Sequence record: MN563784.1
Reading direction: 5' to 3' (one strand)
Length of the DNA: 64,000 bases
Within the stretch, counting starts at the first letter, position 1. Each line of letters begins with the position of its first letter. Shown piece by piece: positions 8,877-49,565 of the stretch. The notes beneath the pieces are model-generated. The model was given only the letters and a program-made list of their open reading frames with translations. It had not been told where the DNA came from and made no database searches. A program made the position numbers and the translations under genes.

Positions 8877-9791
8877 ATGTTTAACATCCATAAATACGCT
8901 AAAAGTATTTCACTAGAAAATGATTGTCAGGATCTAATTGAATCTGACAATATTGTTAATGATGATATTAGTTTAGTACAAGTTGATCCAAAACAACAGC
9001 TTGTAGATATTACTGAGACTATTTCTCAAGAAGCTAATTTCGCAACAAACGCTATTAACATTATCAATAAACGCGGTGCTAATTTTGCTATCGCTGCTCG
9101 TAATGCATTTACGTCGATGACTAACTGGAGTAATCAAATTATTCCTGAGTTCCATCCAGCGCAGATGCGCCATTTAGTTTCACACATTGATTATTTAGAA
9201 GTAGCAAATACAATCGTGCCACAACCAGTTGGTTTTAATGGTGAGATTCCAGACTATGTTGATTATCTATTAACAGAAGCTAAGGAAATGGCCACTATTA
9301 TTCCAGCGGTATTAGACCCGGTTAAAGCACAACTTGGATATTATCTACAACAGCGTGCTGATCGAATGGATAAGCGTGGCTTTGCTAATTCATTTGCAAT
9401 GGCATCGATCAATGATCTTGCTAAAGATGCTTCTTTCTATGACAGTGACAACCGGTCAAGTACAGCTGAGTTTGGTAAGCTTTACCCATCATTAAATTCA
9501 TTTGTTGACGCAACAAAGAAAATGAACGATATTCGTAGCATTTTATCACGGGTTCGTCCAAATGATGTAAAACGTGCTTCAGAAGCGCTTAGTCAATTAA
9601 TTGATAGCTTTATGGAGGATGTTAAGGATAGTAACTCTGACACCTCTCCAGAGCTATTACAGACATTAATTGAAGGGGTTACATGGGCAGCAGACCATGT
9701 TGAACGTTATTCAACACTCTTTACCAAGATTGTTGAGACTGCAAACACAATGAAAGCCACTGAAGATATTCTTCGTGAAATCATTGGATAA
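8877..9791 (+). CDS. Virion head protein (gp153-like)
   Basis: 304 aa, helical. N-terminal ISLE matches the head-protease S/A/G-X-E motif. Confidence 0.65.
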   Translation: MFNIHKYAKSISLENDCQDLIESDNIVNDDISLVQVDPKQQLVDITETISQEANFATNAINIINKRGANFAIAARNAFTSMTNWSNQIIPEFHPAQMRHLVSHIDYLEVANTIVPQPVGFNGEIPDYVDYLLTEAKEMATIIPAVLDPVKAQLGYYLQQRADRMDKRGFANSFAMASINDLAKDASFYDSDNRSSTAEFGKLYPSLNSFVDATKKMNDIRSILSRVRPNDVKRASEALSQLIDSFMEDVKDSNSDTSPELLQTLIEGVTWAADHVERYSTLFTKIVETANTMKATEDILREIIG

Positions 9792-16652: not shown

Positions 16653-18221
16653 ATGGCTAAGAAAAAAACAGTTCCCGCAATGGATTTCTTTGCAAGTCTT
16701 GAGCGCGTTTCTGATGCTGAAGATAAGAATGTCAATCTTGATGTTGGTAAAGAATTACCAGAACAATTAAAAGATGATGAAGATGGTAAAGTAAATCCAT
16801 GTGATGAAGTTACCAATGTCGTTACCAATACCCCAATTGACGTATGCAAAGGTCCAGATGTTGATGGAACTGCTGATAAGATCAATGATAAGAAGATTCA
16901 TGTTAGTCAAGGGCTAAAAGAATTCCAAGTAGCTAAAGGTGATCGTGTTGAAAACGAAATCACTGAAACAGCTGATGAAATGATCACTAAAGTAAGTGAT
17001 ACTAAAGATCTTAATGTTAGTACCAAAAAACCACACCAAATTGCAGATGTCCCATCGAATGAAGACATTTCTATTATGGAAGCCAATGAGACTGAGCAGC
17101 TAGACCATGGCTATGATGCCACCGCACTACTGGAAACTACTGAAGATATCATCACTGGTGAACTAGATGATCATCTAGAATCATTATCAGTTGAAATGTT
17201 TACAATTGTAAATGAACTGACTAAAGTAGAATCTGTTCAAACTGCATTAGAAAACTATATTGGTTTAGTTAGTAACCGCCATCATCGCGGGCATGATGTC
17301 GATCATGATCTAGCTAAAGCTATTAGCATCGCGCTAGAGTCATTTGACTATAAATATTTTAATAACACTGTGCCATCAATGGAATCCTTTATATCACCGC
17401 TAACTCGGCCTAAAGCTTCTATTGAAGTATTAGATAATCTACAAGCTAAAGCAAAAGAAGTATCTACTGTTGCATTAGATTTCATTAAGAAGCTAATTCG
17501 CATTGTTGTAGAAACTTATCAACGTATTCGCCAGAATGTCAGTAATCAAATAGAACGCGTTAATAAGATCATGAAACGCGTTAAAGAGAATGAACTACCC
17601 GATGAAGTTCGTACTATCGCAATTCCACGCGATCTGATTCTAGGTGACACTGGTGAGAGTTGGGTTGGTGTAGACCCTGTTCAGGGGGTTACTGTAATCC
17701 GTAATCTATTTGACAGCATTGAAAAGAATGGACTGCGTGCTCTTAAAGCAGCCTTAGCTGGAAAAACAACTGATGATAAAGCACTGGCTTTAGCTAAAGG
17801 TATGTTTGGAACAGCTACCAAAATTAATGCTAATGGTGTCCGATATGCTAGCCCGGTTGTGCCCGGTAATCGTGTTTATACCTTTGGTAAAGACAAAGCT
17901 GCGGTAGACTTCTCCATTCTTGATGCACCGGGTAAACCCAACTATGGAATTACTGTTGAACTATTAGTTGATAAGAATGTTGTTATGGCTCAGCTAAAAG
18001 CAGTTCATAACCTCCTAAATCATCTAAATAATATTCGCGGTATCTCTAAAGAGTCAACTGCTGAAATCATTGCACAGATGACTGATAAAGAAGCAACCAA
18101 TGTTGGTAAGGCTTATCTAACTGGCACCACTGAAGCTAGTAATGATCTGTTTAAATGTGTGATGATCTGGATCACCGTACTTGAGAAACTAGTTGATAGT
18201 GAAATCAAGGAAACTGAATAG
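16653..18221 (+). CDS. Inner-head (inner body) protein, gp162-like
   Basis: 522 aa. Acidic N-terminal propeptide-like region with ASLE, ALES and SMES protease motifs. Confidence 0.8.
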   Translation: MAKKKTVPAMDFFASLERVSDAEDKNVNLDVGKELPEQLKDDEDGKVNPCDEVTNVVTNTPIDVCKGPDVDGTADKINDKKIHVSQGLKEFQVAKGDRVENEITETADEMITKVSDTKDLNVSTKKPHQIADVPSNEDISIMEANETEQLDHGYDATALLETTEDIITGELDDHLESLSVEMFTIVNELTKVESVQTALENYIGLVSNRHHRGHDVDHDLAKAISIALESFDYKYFNNTVPSMESFISPLTRPKASIEVLDNLQAKAKEVSTVALDFIKKLIRIVVETYQRIRQNVSNQIERVNKIMKRVKENELPDEVRTIAIPRDLILGDTGESWVGVDPVQGVTVIRNLFDSIEKNGLRALKAALAGKTTDDKALALAKGMFGTATKINANGVRYASPVVPGNRVYTFGKDKAAVDFSILDAPGKPNYGITVELLVDKNVVMAQLKAVHNLLNHLNNIRGISKESTAEIIAQMTDKEATNVGKAYLTGTTEASNDLFKCVMIWITVLEKLVDSEIKETE

Positions 18222-30095: not shown

Positions 30096-30908
30096 TTAAC
30101 GCATGAAGCCAGGGCGCCTATGTTTAACTGGTGAAATATCCCAGCCAAGACTTTTCGCTAGATCTGTCACATTGGTGATATCAGAACATTCAAAACCCAT
30201 GTTAATTTGACGTTCACGTTCACGCTGTACCTGATATAGAGTATCAGGCGTGATAACCATTAATTGATCTTCATAGTTCTCTAATGCAGGGGAATTCCAT
30301 TTATTAGCACCGTAAATACCACCTTCCCCAACCATATCCCAAGTTGAAATCTCACGGGTATATTTGATACCGCGCATAGGATCATCTTGAGTTATTGACC
30401 TTACCGAGCAATAAGTATTCTGAGAAGGATTGGTAATAGATGCTTCGAAGTACTTACCAAAAGGACCGTATGGTTTGCATTTGCCAAGTACTAGTTTAAT
30501 AGGAAGACCTTTCTCATCTGTAGAATCAACCAGAATAAGTTCCTTAATATGCGCACACACACGATCATCATCGATTTGACGAATTCGCATTAGGTACTCA
30601 TGTTCATTCATCCGTGTGCCATCTTTACGATAGGGTTCAGGGTGTTTGTATTCCATGAATAGAACACCCTTTTTAACACGGCGCATTAAAGGTGAGTCTG
30701 GATTAAACATAGATACGCCGGATGCCATTTCATAGAACATACCAGCTGAATTTCGGGTACCATAAGCTCCTAGTGGAGTTAGATAGTAACCATCCGCATC
30801 AGGTACTAATACACCTTTTTTATTAGTACCGGCTAACATATCACTGCCGATAACTACTTGGTTATTAGTACGCTGTTGCAAACCAGAAAAATTAGAATAT
30901 GGTTGCAT
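30096..30908 (-). CDS. Prohead maturation serine protease (gp175-like)
   Basis: 270 aa; MEYKHP (His89) and CSVRS (Ser168) resemble gp21-type protease motifs. ALE210 is a plausible self-cleavage site 60 aa from the C-terminus. Confidence 0.85.
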   Translation of the reverse strand: MQPYSNFSGLQQRTNNQVVIGSDMLAGTNKKGVLVPDADGYYLTPLGAYGTRNSAGMFYEMASGVSMFNPDSPLMRRVKKGVLFMEYKHPEPYRKDGTRMNEHEYLMRIRQIDDDRVCAHIKELILVDSTDEKGLPIKLVLGKCKPYGPFGKYFEASITNPSQNTYCSVRSITQDDPMRGIKYTREISTWDMVGEGGIYGANKWNSPALENYEDQLMVITPDTLYQVQRERERQINMGFECSDITNVTDLAKSLGWDISPVKHRRPGFMR

Positions 30909-39633: not shown

Positions 39634-48394
<8,761 letters not shown>

Positions 48395-48452: not shown

Positions 48453-48758
48453 ATGTCTCTACTTAAAAAGATCGGTCTTGCTCTAATTGGATCAGAAGGA
48501 CGTAAGGAAGTTTTTGAACAAGAGTTAACTAAACTATCAAATACTAATGCAGTTATTGATCAAATGGTGATTAATGTACTGGGTAGTAAGAAGAAGTTAA
48601 ATGACTTCCTAATTGAAGCTGAAGAAATTGATAATAAGAAACTAGGCTTCATTAAAAATCGAGCCGAACTTATTAAACTAGTCAAATCTAAATATTCACA
48701 AGACCCTCGGGTTGCCGATGTAGTAGTGTCACTTTACATTGGTGGTTTCATTTATTGA
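48453..48758 (+). CDS. Hypothetical protein
   Basis: 101 aa, AGGT RBS. Confidence 0.7.
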   Translation: MSLLKKIGLALIGSEGRKEVFEQELTKLSNTNAVIDQMVINVLGSKKKLNDFLIEAEEIDNKKLGFIKNRAELIKLVKSKYSQDPRVADVVVSLYIGGFIY

Positions 48759-48765
48759 GGTAAGT

Positions 48766-49458
48766 ATGTCTAAACCTAATCTTGAGTGGTTAGCTTCCTT
48801 AGAAAGTAAAGAAGCTAAAAGTACAGTAGATGCTTCTGATATGGATAATGACCAAAAGGAAGGTAGTGATAAATCACAACATGATGAAGCTACTGAAACT
48901 AAGAAGAATATAACTGCAACTGATATACAAATTGCAATTGAAGAATATGCGCGTATCCGTGCATTAACCACTACTAAAGATCTTCCAGCTGACCCTGAAC
49001 CAGGCGATACTTATCATGTAAATGGGGTAGATTGGATTTATCAAGAAGATGGTGGATGGGTAACTATGCAAGGTATTTATGGCCATGAACATTTTGATGA
49101 AAATGGTCTAAATATTGAAGCAAGTGGCATTGACCAGAAATCAGGTGCAACTAAACGTTATGTGGTAACTGGTTATAATGCTCAGACTAACCCAGCTGCT
49201 ATGCCTGGTGATAACCTGACTGAATGCGTTATCCTAATGCAGAATGGACTTGTTCCAGAAGTTGGTGTAAATGGCCTAACTGCTGACTGTCTAATTAAAA
49301 TCGTTAAAGATTTATTTGAAGGTTACCAAGCAGGCCCATTTGCATGTGAAGAGAATCAGGTAGTGATTAATTCAATGGACCGTGCTCTTAGTGCAATTCA
49401 TCAACGCTTCGTACGACGTAAAGAACAGGGTACTGAAGGTACTTATAGTGGTAATTAA
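48766..49458 (+). CDS. tad1: Tad1-family signal-sponge domain fused to an N-terminal extension
   Basis: ATG at 48766 (GAGG RBS). C-terminal MQNG...NG...LIKIV...YQAGPFACEEN...R..RR...EGT matches the recalled Tad1 pattern FQKG...HG...LLEIV...FQAGPF..REN...R...R...LGT. Confidence 0.75.
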   Translation: MSKPNLEWLASLESKEAKSTVDASDMDNDQKEGSDKSQHDEATETKKNITATDIQIAIEEYARIRALTTTKDLPADPEPGDTYHVNGVDWIYQEDGGWVTMQGIYGHEHFDENGLNIEASGIDQKSGATKRYVVTGYNAQTNPAAMPGDNLTECVILMQNGLVPEVGVNGLTADCLIKIVKDLFEGYQAGPFACEENQVVINSMDRALSAIHQRFVRRKEQGTEGTYSGN

Positions 49459-49464
49459 CATATT

Positions 49465-49487
49465 GCCTCCCTTCGGGGAGGCTTTAT
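49465..49487 (+). terminator. Intrinsic terminator
   Basis: GCCTCCC-TTCG-GGGAGGC followed by TTTAT. Confidence 0.8.
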
Positions 49488-49495
49488 ATCGTAAT

Positions 49496-49520
49496 GAAAA
49501 AAATTTGAGATTTATATTAC
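49496..49520 (+). promoter_or_regulatory. Early (vRNAP) promoter
   Basis: A-tract, then TTTGAGATT, then TATATTAC (49513-49520). Confidence 0.75.
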
Positions 49521-49565
49521 TAATACGCAATTAGGAAAATAACTATCTAGTAAAGAGGAATCATA

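Follow-up and report, generated by a model that had tools for sequence, protein, structure and literature searches.

Certain phages package anti-defence proteins in the head and inject them with the DNA, which lets them act ahead of any expression from the phage genome. The T4 internal protein IPI* and the Dar proteins of P1 belong to this group, and the N-terminal targeting sequence of IPI* is removed by the prohead protease. These proteins block restriction nucleases, as opposed to taking up second messengers, and bear no relation in sequence or fold to Tad1 (Thoeris anti-defence 1). In the jumbo phage phiKZ, ejection or inner-body proteins such as gp93 are likewise packaged in the head, cut by the gp175 protease and injected with the DNA, as is phiKZ gp184; the cargo fold of gp93, however, belongs to the helical PF12699 family and is unrelated to Tad1. 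The gp175 recognition motif is S/A/G-X-E (PMC5694885, in which T4 capsid-targeting sequences are also mentioned; PMC10449902). Here, we analysed a 64,000-nucleotide stretch of DNA (the window) from the phiKZ-like jumbo phage Pseudomonas phage vB_PA32_GUMS (MN563784.1), focusing on an open reading frame (ORF) at positions 48766 to 49458 whose product joins a Tad1 domain to an N-terminal extension of the head-protein type.

The closest described protein is phiKZ gp184. It is a minor capsid protein of the inner capsid vertex complex and a substrate of gp175, and cryogenic electron microscopy showed that it occupies the space separating gp86 from a hexamer subunit (PMC11297242). A C-terminally 3xFLAG-tagged gp184 was packaged and was injected into cells in which translation was blocked (PMC10449902), and Chan et al. 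report N-termini remaining wedged in the capsid and C-termini set free by the protease and injected. A 2025 preprint names phiKZ gp184 'Tad1' and reports it to be non-essential, and a 2025 review describes Tad1 as 'encoded by orf184' in phiKZ. For Tad1, later phiKZ papers refer to Li et al. (Nature 2024), and binding of glyco-cyclic ADP-ribose (gcADPR) together with relief from Thoeris is stated for gp184 by later papers. Thus, the hypothesis of a virion-delivered Tad1 sponge, which a first-pass annotation of the window had raised whilst leaving open whether it was already reported, is correct and has been published for phiKZ gp184. New here would be a predicted anchor module, a candidate G-x-E cut site in the linker behind it and the apparent loss of the trinucleotide site.

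The ORF at 48766..49458 (+ strand) encodes 230 amino acids (aa) that are 96.1% identical to phiKZ gp184 (PHIKZ184; PDB 8Y6V chain I) over 230/230 residues, and the gene is a close orthologue of phiKZ gp184/Tad1. Both proteins are 230 aa in length, with gp181-gp182-gp183 encoded upstream and gp185-gp188 downstream in both phages. The nine substitutions that separate them lie at residues 23, 39, 45, 46, 48, 54, 75, 177 and 215. None affects a motif or pocket residue, such that the S-L-E, the G-H-E and the pocket residues considered below are identical in the two. PHROG 22140 matches the protein over its full length (E 3.6e-160), and the nucleotide sequence of the gp184 region is 91-99% identical to that of 46 other phiKZ-like jumbo phages. 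The ATG at 48766, with a GAGG ribosome-binding site before it, agrees with the phiKZ annotation and with the 230-aa PDB sequence. An in-frame TTG at 48739 was rejected as the start; a gene beginning there would run over the end of gp183, and the TTG is without a ribosome-binding site. The ORF, every motif quoted for it in the first-pass annotation and the last 118 residues running from nucleotide 49102 (residue 113) were all found in the sequence as given. We put the probability at roughly 85% that this gene is the vB_PA32_GUMS orthologue of phiKZ gp184/Tad1 and a modular, virion-delivered immune-signal sponge. That the sponge is packaged, matured by the protease and injected, as had been proposed, is supported by analogy with the 96.1%-identical phiKZ protein.

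The Tad1 domain occupies residues 109 to 230 (49090..49455, + strand), with the fold itself beginning at residue ~113, as judged by phmmer, profile and Foldseek comparisons. With phmmer, the single window sequence matched six solved Tad1 chains (E 1.5e-6 to 1.3e-5), and a family profile built from 20 relatives matched Tad1 chains with E 8.6e-13 to 1e-10; the chains reached by phmmer or the profile included 8kbb, 8kbe, 8kbg, 8kbh and 7uav. An AlphaFold2 model was generated from an alignment of 29 relatives and had a mean predicted local distance difference test score (pLDDT) of 73.7. It replaced a single-sequence AlphaFold2 model that was discarded at a mean pLDDT of 40.8. Within the retained model the Tad1 domain has a pLDDT of 74-97, and is predicted to comprise strands at 116-122, 129-135 and 153-158 and helices at 173-189 and 195-220, followed by a G-T-E-G-T tail. 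When the model was compared with the PDB using Foldseek, all 20 best matches were Tad1 (E 1.4e-6 to 5.7e-5, probability 1.00, target template modelling score 0.64-0.72), among them 7UAV, 7UAW, 8SMD, 8KBE/F and 8KBB/C/D.

The standalone Tad1 proteins, namely CbTad1 (7UAV/7UAW/8SMD/8KBE/F), CmTad1 (8KBB/C/D) and Tad1 of Bacillus phage SBSphiJ7, are homologous to the window protein across the whole domain at an identity of 20-27%, and have the same beta-sheet and two-helix fold as is predicted for its C-terminal domain. The window protein differs from them in possessing ~110 additional N-terminal residues, in which motifs for head targeting, anchoring and proteolysis are found. Sequence, predicted fold and pocket residues all identify residues ~113-230 as a genuine Tad1 domain. 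The likeness to Tad1 that had been recognised by eye in the C-terminal ~118 residues was thus borne out by phmmer, by the family profile and by the AlphaFold2/Foldseek comparison alike.

In translated searches (tblastn), the protein reaches 88 Bacillus phage records, one of which is annotated as an anti-thoeris protein. In Bastille-like Bacillus phages, several standalone Tad1 homologues carry the label 'putative structural protein' or 'structural protein' (for example, JX094431.1 orf166, NC_024137.1, NC_027352.1, NC_027355.1, KX961630.1 and OK499983.1). Neither Pfam-A nor NCBIfam assigned a family to the window protein, to its C-terminal half or to any of five relatives, and a WASH-7_C Pfam match under the cut-off (E 0.095) was rejected as low-complexity noise. 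PF24729.3 is listed for most of the relatives in the protein database, whereas Pfam-A gives no match for the window protein or the five relatives even at E 10; this discrepancy probably reflects differing versions of the library. PF24729.3 would be the Acb2/Tad1 hairpin family, a name that the BFVD matches bear.

Ligand sites were mapped through HMMER alignments to CbTad1 and CmTad1, ungapped over the helices, using the residues named in the 2023 preprint of Li et al. (PMC10680739); columns were counted in 29 relatives of 36-83% identity. Mutation of CbTad1 F82, N92, R109 or R113 abolishes binding of gcADPR and of 2',3'-cyclic GMP-AMP (PMC10680739). These residues align to Y187, N197, R214 and R218 of the window protein, the codons of which fall within 49324..49419 (+ strand) with those of E195 and N202 between them. 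Position 187 is F in 21 and Y in 8 of the relatives, and N197, R214 and R218 are each found in 29/29. Two pocket changes that had been flagged in the first-pass annotation do align as thought, but neither coincides with a binding residue that PMC10680739 names in the sections covered here. The change that matters for ligand range is probably a different one, the loss of an arginine and a threonine at E195 and N202.

This change heads a group of observations that weigh against the reading of the protein as a full virion-delivered Tad1 sponge, or narrow it. In CbTad1, R90 and T97 (R88 and T95 in CmTad1) bind cyclic trinucleotide and are also needed for the hexamer; the site is found in most Tad1 members and is substituted in 6% (PMC10680739). 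Neither residue is kept in the window protein, which has E195 (49348-49350) and N202 (49369-49371) instead. Across the 29 relatives, six short forms included, position 195 holds E (26 relatives), D (2) or P (1), and position 202 is variable. Furthermore, the CmTad1 hexamer-interface residues K96, Q98, E99, M102, W103 and K106 align to S203, D205, R206, S209, A210 and Q213, and are not conserved at the aligned positions in the relatives. Since neither the trinucleotide site nor the hexamer interface is conserved, sponge activity against the cyclic oligonucleotide-based anti-phage signalling system (CBASS) may be limited to dinucleotide signals. On the aligned residues, the jumbo-phage Tad1 clade would bind gcADPR and perhaps dinucleotides, and would not bind trinucleotides in the known way. 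A published observation fits the loss of the trinucleotide site: a phiKZ nlp1 mutant that retains tad1 is fully blocked by a CBASS signalling through cyclic triadenylate (cAAA), and is rescued by the Acb2 sponge. The trinucleotide site is nonetheless a secondary property of Tad1 and not a defining one, and the window protein stays a member of the family.

The remaining points of this group concern delivery. Packaging, cleavage and injection in vB_PA32_GUMS would carry over from phiKZ by analogy, and the exact cut sites and the ligand range are likewise inferred. The 2023 preprint of Li et al. makes no mention of phiKZ. The part of gp184 ordered in the phiKZ shell is located below by counting mismatches and not from coordinates. 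Finally, there are five vertex-binding complexes per vertex (PMC11297242), from which simple arithmetic gives at most ~55-60 copies per virion, or ~0.1 micromolar in a cell of 1 femtolitre, and therefore a small buffering capacity.

The N-terminal extension can be divided into three parts. Residues 1-13 (48766..48804, + strand) resemble a head-protein signal ending in S11-L12-E13, a candidate gp175 site that lies within the heptapeptide W-L-A-S-L-E-S (residues 8-14). An [SAG]-x-E motif occurs at residues ~10-16 in 16/20 long relatives, and phiKZ gp93 is processed at SLE-13 (PMC5694885). Residues 14-50 (48805..48915, + strand) form an acidic, polar spacer that is disordered by composition and pLDDT, with 10 Asp/Glu in the 36 residues from 15 to 50 and a pLDDT of <50 for residues 14-46 in the AlphaFold2 model. 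Of the nine substitutions relative to phiKZ gp184, six are located in this acidic stretch, at residues 23-54 (48832-48927); gp175 is 100% identical in both phages.

The first-pass annotation had pointed to the same early S-L-E in two head proteins encoded elsewhere in the window, and both instances are real. The motif is found at residues 12-14 of the ORF at 8877 (8877-9791) and at residues 15-17 of that at 16653 (16653-18221), the orthologues of phiKZ gp153 and gp162 respectively, each annotated as a structural head protein. The window contains 61 ATG-initiated ORFs with a length of 100 aa or more, and S-L-E occurs within the first 25 residues of only three (the gp153, gp162 and gp184 orthologues) where 0.5 would be expected. 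These three proteins hold 3 of the 7 S-L-E tripeptides found across the 61 ORFs.

The third part, residues 51-108 (48916..49089, + strand), is predicted to consist of a helix and a small beta-rich module ending at G106-H107-E108, and is a probable capsid anchor. In the AlphaFold2 model this region comprises a helix at 51-62 and strands at 65-67, 82-85, 88-92 and 98-100, with a pLDDT of ~80. The extension thus does contain the acidic stretch and the S-L-E noted previously, but it also holds a beta-rich module (~55-108) and is not just a propeptide and spacer. In 8Y6V chain I only 34 residues are resolved, which by Foldseek are 97% identical to the window protein, and the modelled part of gp184 is described as 'mainly beta-strands' and 'shorter than the product of proteolytic cleavage' (PMC11297242). 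With one mismatch in 34 residues, nine known differences between the two proteins and a structure of mostly strands, the resolved stretch was placed within residues 55-108, and it most likely lies within the middle module. Other placements with a single mismatch (starts at 1-5, 144-177 and 182-197) were considered and are less likely, being helical or poor in strands. If the 34 resolved residues do lie in the middle module, this module would be the capsid anchor and the Tad1 domain would not be ordered in the shell.

These observations bear on a role for gp184 as nothing other than capsid cement, in which the Tad1-like domain would be a structural relic devoid of nucleotide binding. The position of gp184 in the vertex-binding complex, where it fills the gap between gp86 and the hexamer (PMC11297242), is as expected of a cement protein, and the loss of the trinucleotide-site and hexamer-interface residues might be expected of a relic. 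Conversely, the four pocket residues are invariant in the 29 relatives (position 187 being F or Y) while nearby positions vary, the gp184 gene is dispensable for phiKZ growth (2025 preprint), the Tad1 domain by its deduced placement lies outside the 34 ordered shell residues and the literature assigns gp184 an anti-defence activity. We therefore regard a purely structural role as highly improbable, and retain the reading of a sponge carried on a capsid anchor.

Release of the sponge from such an anchor would depend on where the chain is cut. Between the middle module and the Tad1 domain, residues 106-112 form the only low-confidence linker in the model. It begins with G106-H107-E108 (49081..49089, + strand), which by motif, linker position and conservation is a candidate internal gp175 site that could free the Tad1 domain. 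An [SAG]-x-E motif is found 17-33 residues ahead of the conserved K130-R131 in 20/20 long relatives, and the G-x-E is aligned in all module-bearing relatives and in phiPA3 gp096. A cut after E108 would free a Tad1 of 122 aa, the size of a standalone Tad1.

A single cut after S-L-E 11-13, with residues 14-230 staying as one chain that is injected whole, would instead follow the proposal of the first-pass annotation that S-L-E is the motif cut by gp175. This tripeptide matches the mapped SLE-13 site of phiKZ gp93 (PMC5694885), the N-terminal motif is kept in 16/20 relatives and a product of residues 14-230 would likewise exceed the modelled part in length, as PMC11297242 states of the cleavage product. 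The wedged N-termini and liberated C-termini described by Chan et al., however, call for the chain to be severed between the anchor and Tad1; a G/S-x-E is conserved in position in the disordered linker at 106-112 and is common to the phiPA3 gp096 module; and a piece held between gp86 and the hexamer is not obviously free to leave. On balance, one cut at the N-terminus is unlikely to be the whole of the processing. S-L-E thus stands as a conserved candidate gp175 motif with a precedent in gp93, but G106-H107-E108 is a likelier point of release for the sponge than S-L-E 11-13, and both sites may be used. No cut site is listed for gp184 in the supplements of Fossati et al.

Long Tad1 forms are also encoded by other Chimalliviridae, where they are represented by 201phi2-1 gp280 (199 aa), phiPA3 gp217 (189 aa) and PHROG 23843. 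Similarly to the window protein, gp280 and gp217 possess a W-A-x-G/S-L-E-type signal, an acidic spacer and an S-x-E ahead of a Tad1 domain that is 53-62% identical to that of the window protein, and their genes are likewise placed after a gp182 homologue; 201phi2-1 gp280 has been detected by mass spectrometry. Unlike the window protein, both are without the beta-rich middle module. This module, at residues 56-111 (48931-49098) and with the G-x-E included, recurs with 54% identity (E 6e-18) at residues 181-235 of phiPA3 gp096 (1961-2926 in the phiPA3 locus), a structural protein of the virion, 321 aa in length, that lies amid the inner-body paralogues. The 86 residues of gp096 past the module gave no Pfam or PDB sequence match. 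From these alignments, the module and its G-x-E look like a movable cassette of anchor and linker.

A broader proposal can be made tentatively, and we consider it somewhat less probable than its converse. The jumbo-phage Tad1 clade would be a specialised variant that has lost the trinucleotide site and hexamer interface and that acts as a dimer, taking up only gcADPR and dinucleotides. Its vehicle into the cell would be a portable cassette of head signal, anchor and cleavable G-x-E linker, which related phages join to other cargo such as the last 86 residues of phiPA3 gp096.

The enzyme expected to process gp184 is encoded within the same window. The orthologue of the gp175 head maturation protease (270 aa; 30099..30908, - strand) was located by a tblastn search with phiKZ gp175, to which it is 100% identical over 270 aa; phiKZ gp175 is annotated 'head protease' in AF399011. 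The genes preceding the gp184 orthologue are those of gp182 (664 aa; 46400..48394, + strand), the first gene past a terminator at 46352-46379, and gp183 (101 aa; 48453..48758, + strand), which is immediately upstream. A further stem-loop terminator, a G+C-rich hairpin identified by a terminator scan, lies right after the gp184 stop codon (49465..49482, + strand). The terminator-like hairpins at 46352-46379 and 49465-49482 flank gp182-gp184, and the three genes would therefore be read as one structural-gene transcript. Downstream are the orthologues of gp185 to gp188, in the order of the phiKZ record.

An AT-rich stretch with TATATTAC is present near 49511-49521, ~30 nucleotides past the terminator and ahead of the gp185 orthologue. 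We take TATATTAC to be the core or consensus of the phiKZ early promoter, making this a candidate promoter only. A sigma-70 promoter scan returned 13 sites against 19.7 in shuffled sequence and was uninformative for vB_PA32_GUMS. The gene context described in the first-pass annotation was accordingly right in one respect: a terminator followed by this AT-rich stretch fits a position before the next promoter. The gene does not directly follow the tail-tip gene, however; the orthologue of the tail-associated endolysin gp181 lies two genes upstream and gp183 adjoins.

This arrangement is informative with regard to when gp184 is made. Were gp184 mainly a cytoplasmic sponge that each infection produces afresh, packaging in the capsid would be secondary and would bring little anti-defence gain. 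Such a protein would overcome the disparity between ≤~55-60 copies per virion (arithmetic from PMC11297242) and the large amounts usual for sponges, and standalone Tad1 works when simply expressed in cells (PMC10680739). Set against this, the gene sits in a structural block past the tail endolysin and between terminators, a position from which newly made gp184 would probably be late. In addition, the N-terminal signal and cleavage motifs are kept over relatives of 40-50% identity, and injection has been shown for phiKZ gp184 (PMC10449902). A chiefly cytoplasmic role is thus improbable, and delivery by the virion remains our preferred reading.

Taken as a sequence of events, the gp184 orthologue would be made from the gp182-gp183-gp184 structural transcript and built into the prohead, where residues ~51-108 would wedge between gp86 and the hexamer beside each vertex on the inside of the shell. 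A gp175-type protease would cut the protein after Glu, and the Tad1 part would enter the next host cell along with the DNA. There it would bind the gcADPR of Thoeris, and probably cyclic dinucleotides of CBASS, in the dimer-interface pocket formed by Y187, N197, R214 and R218. Binding of the signal would precede any phage gene expression.

A sponge that is loaded in advance answers a problem of timing, namely that Thoeris and CBASS signals can rise before phage expression. The same argument is already in print for phiKZ gp184/Tad1, to which the window adds one orthologue within a group of Pseudomonas phages relevant to therapy. Tad1 packaging might extend beyond the jumbo phages, if the 'structural' labels in the Bacillus phage records rest on virion proteomics. 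The remaining value of the locus would lie in the position of the cut between sponge and anchor, in the loss of the trinucleotide site across the clade and in the cassette, which may serve as a marker of other injected cargo in jumbo phages.

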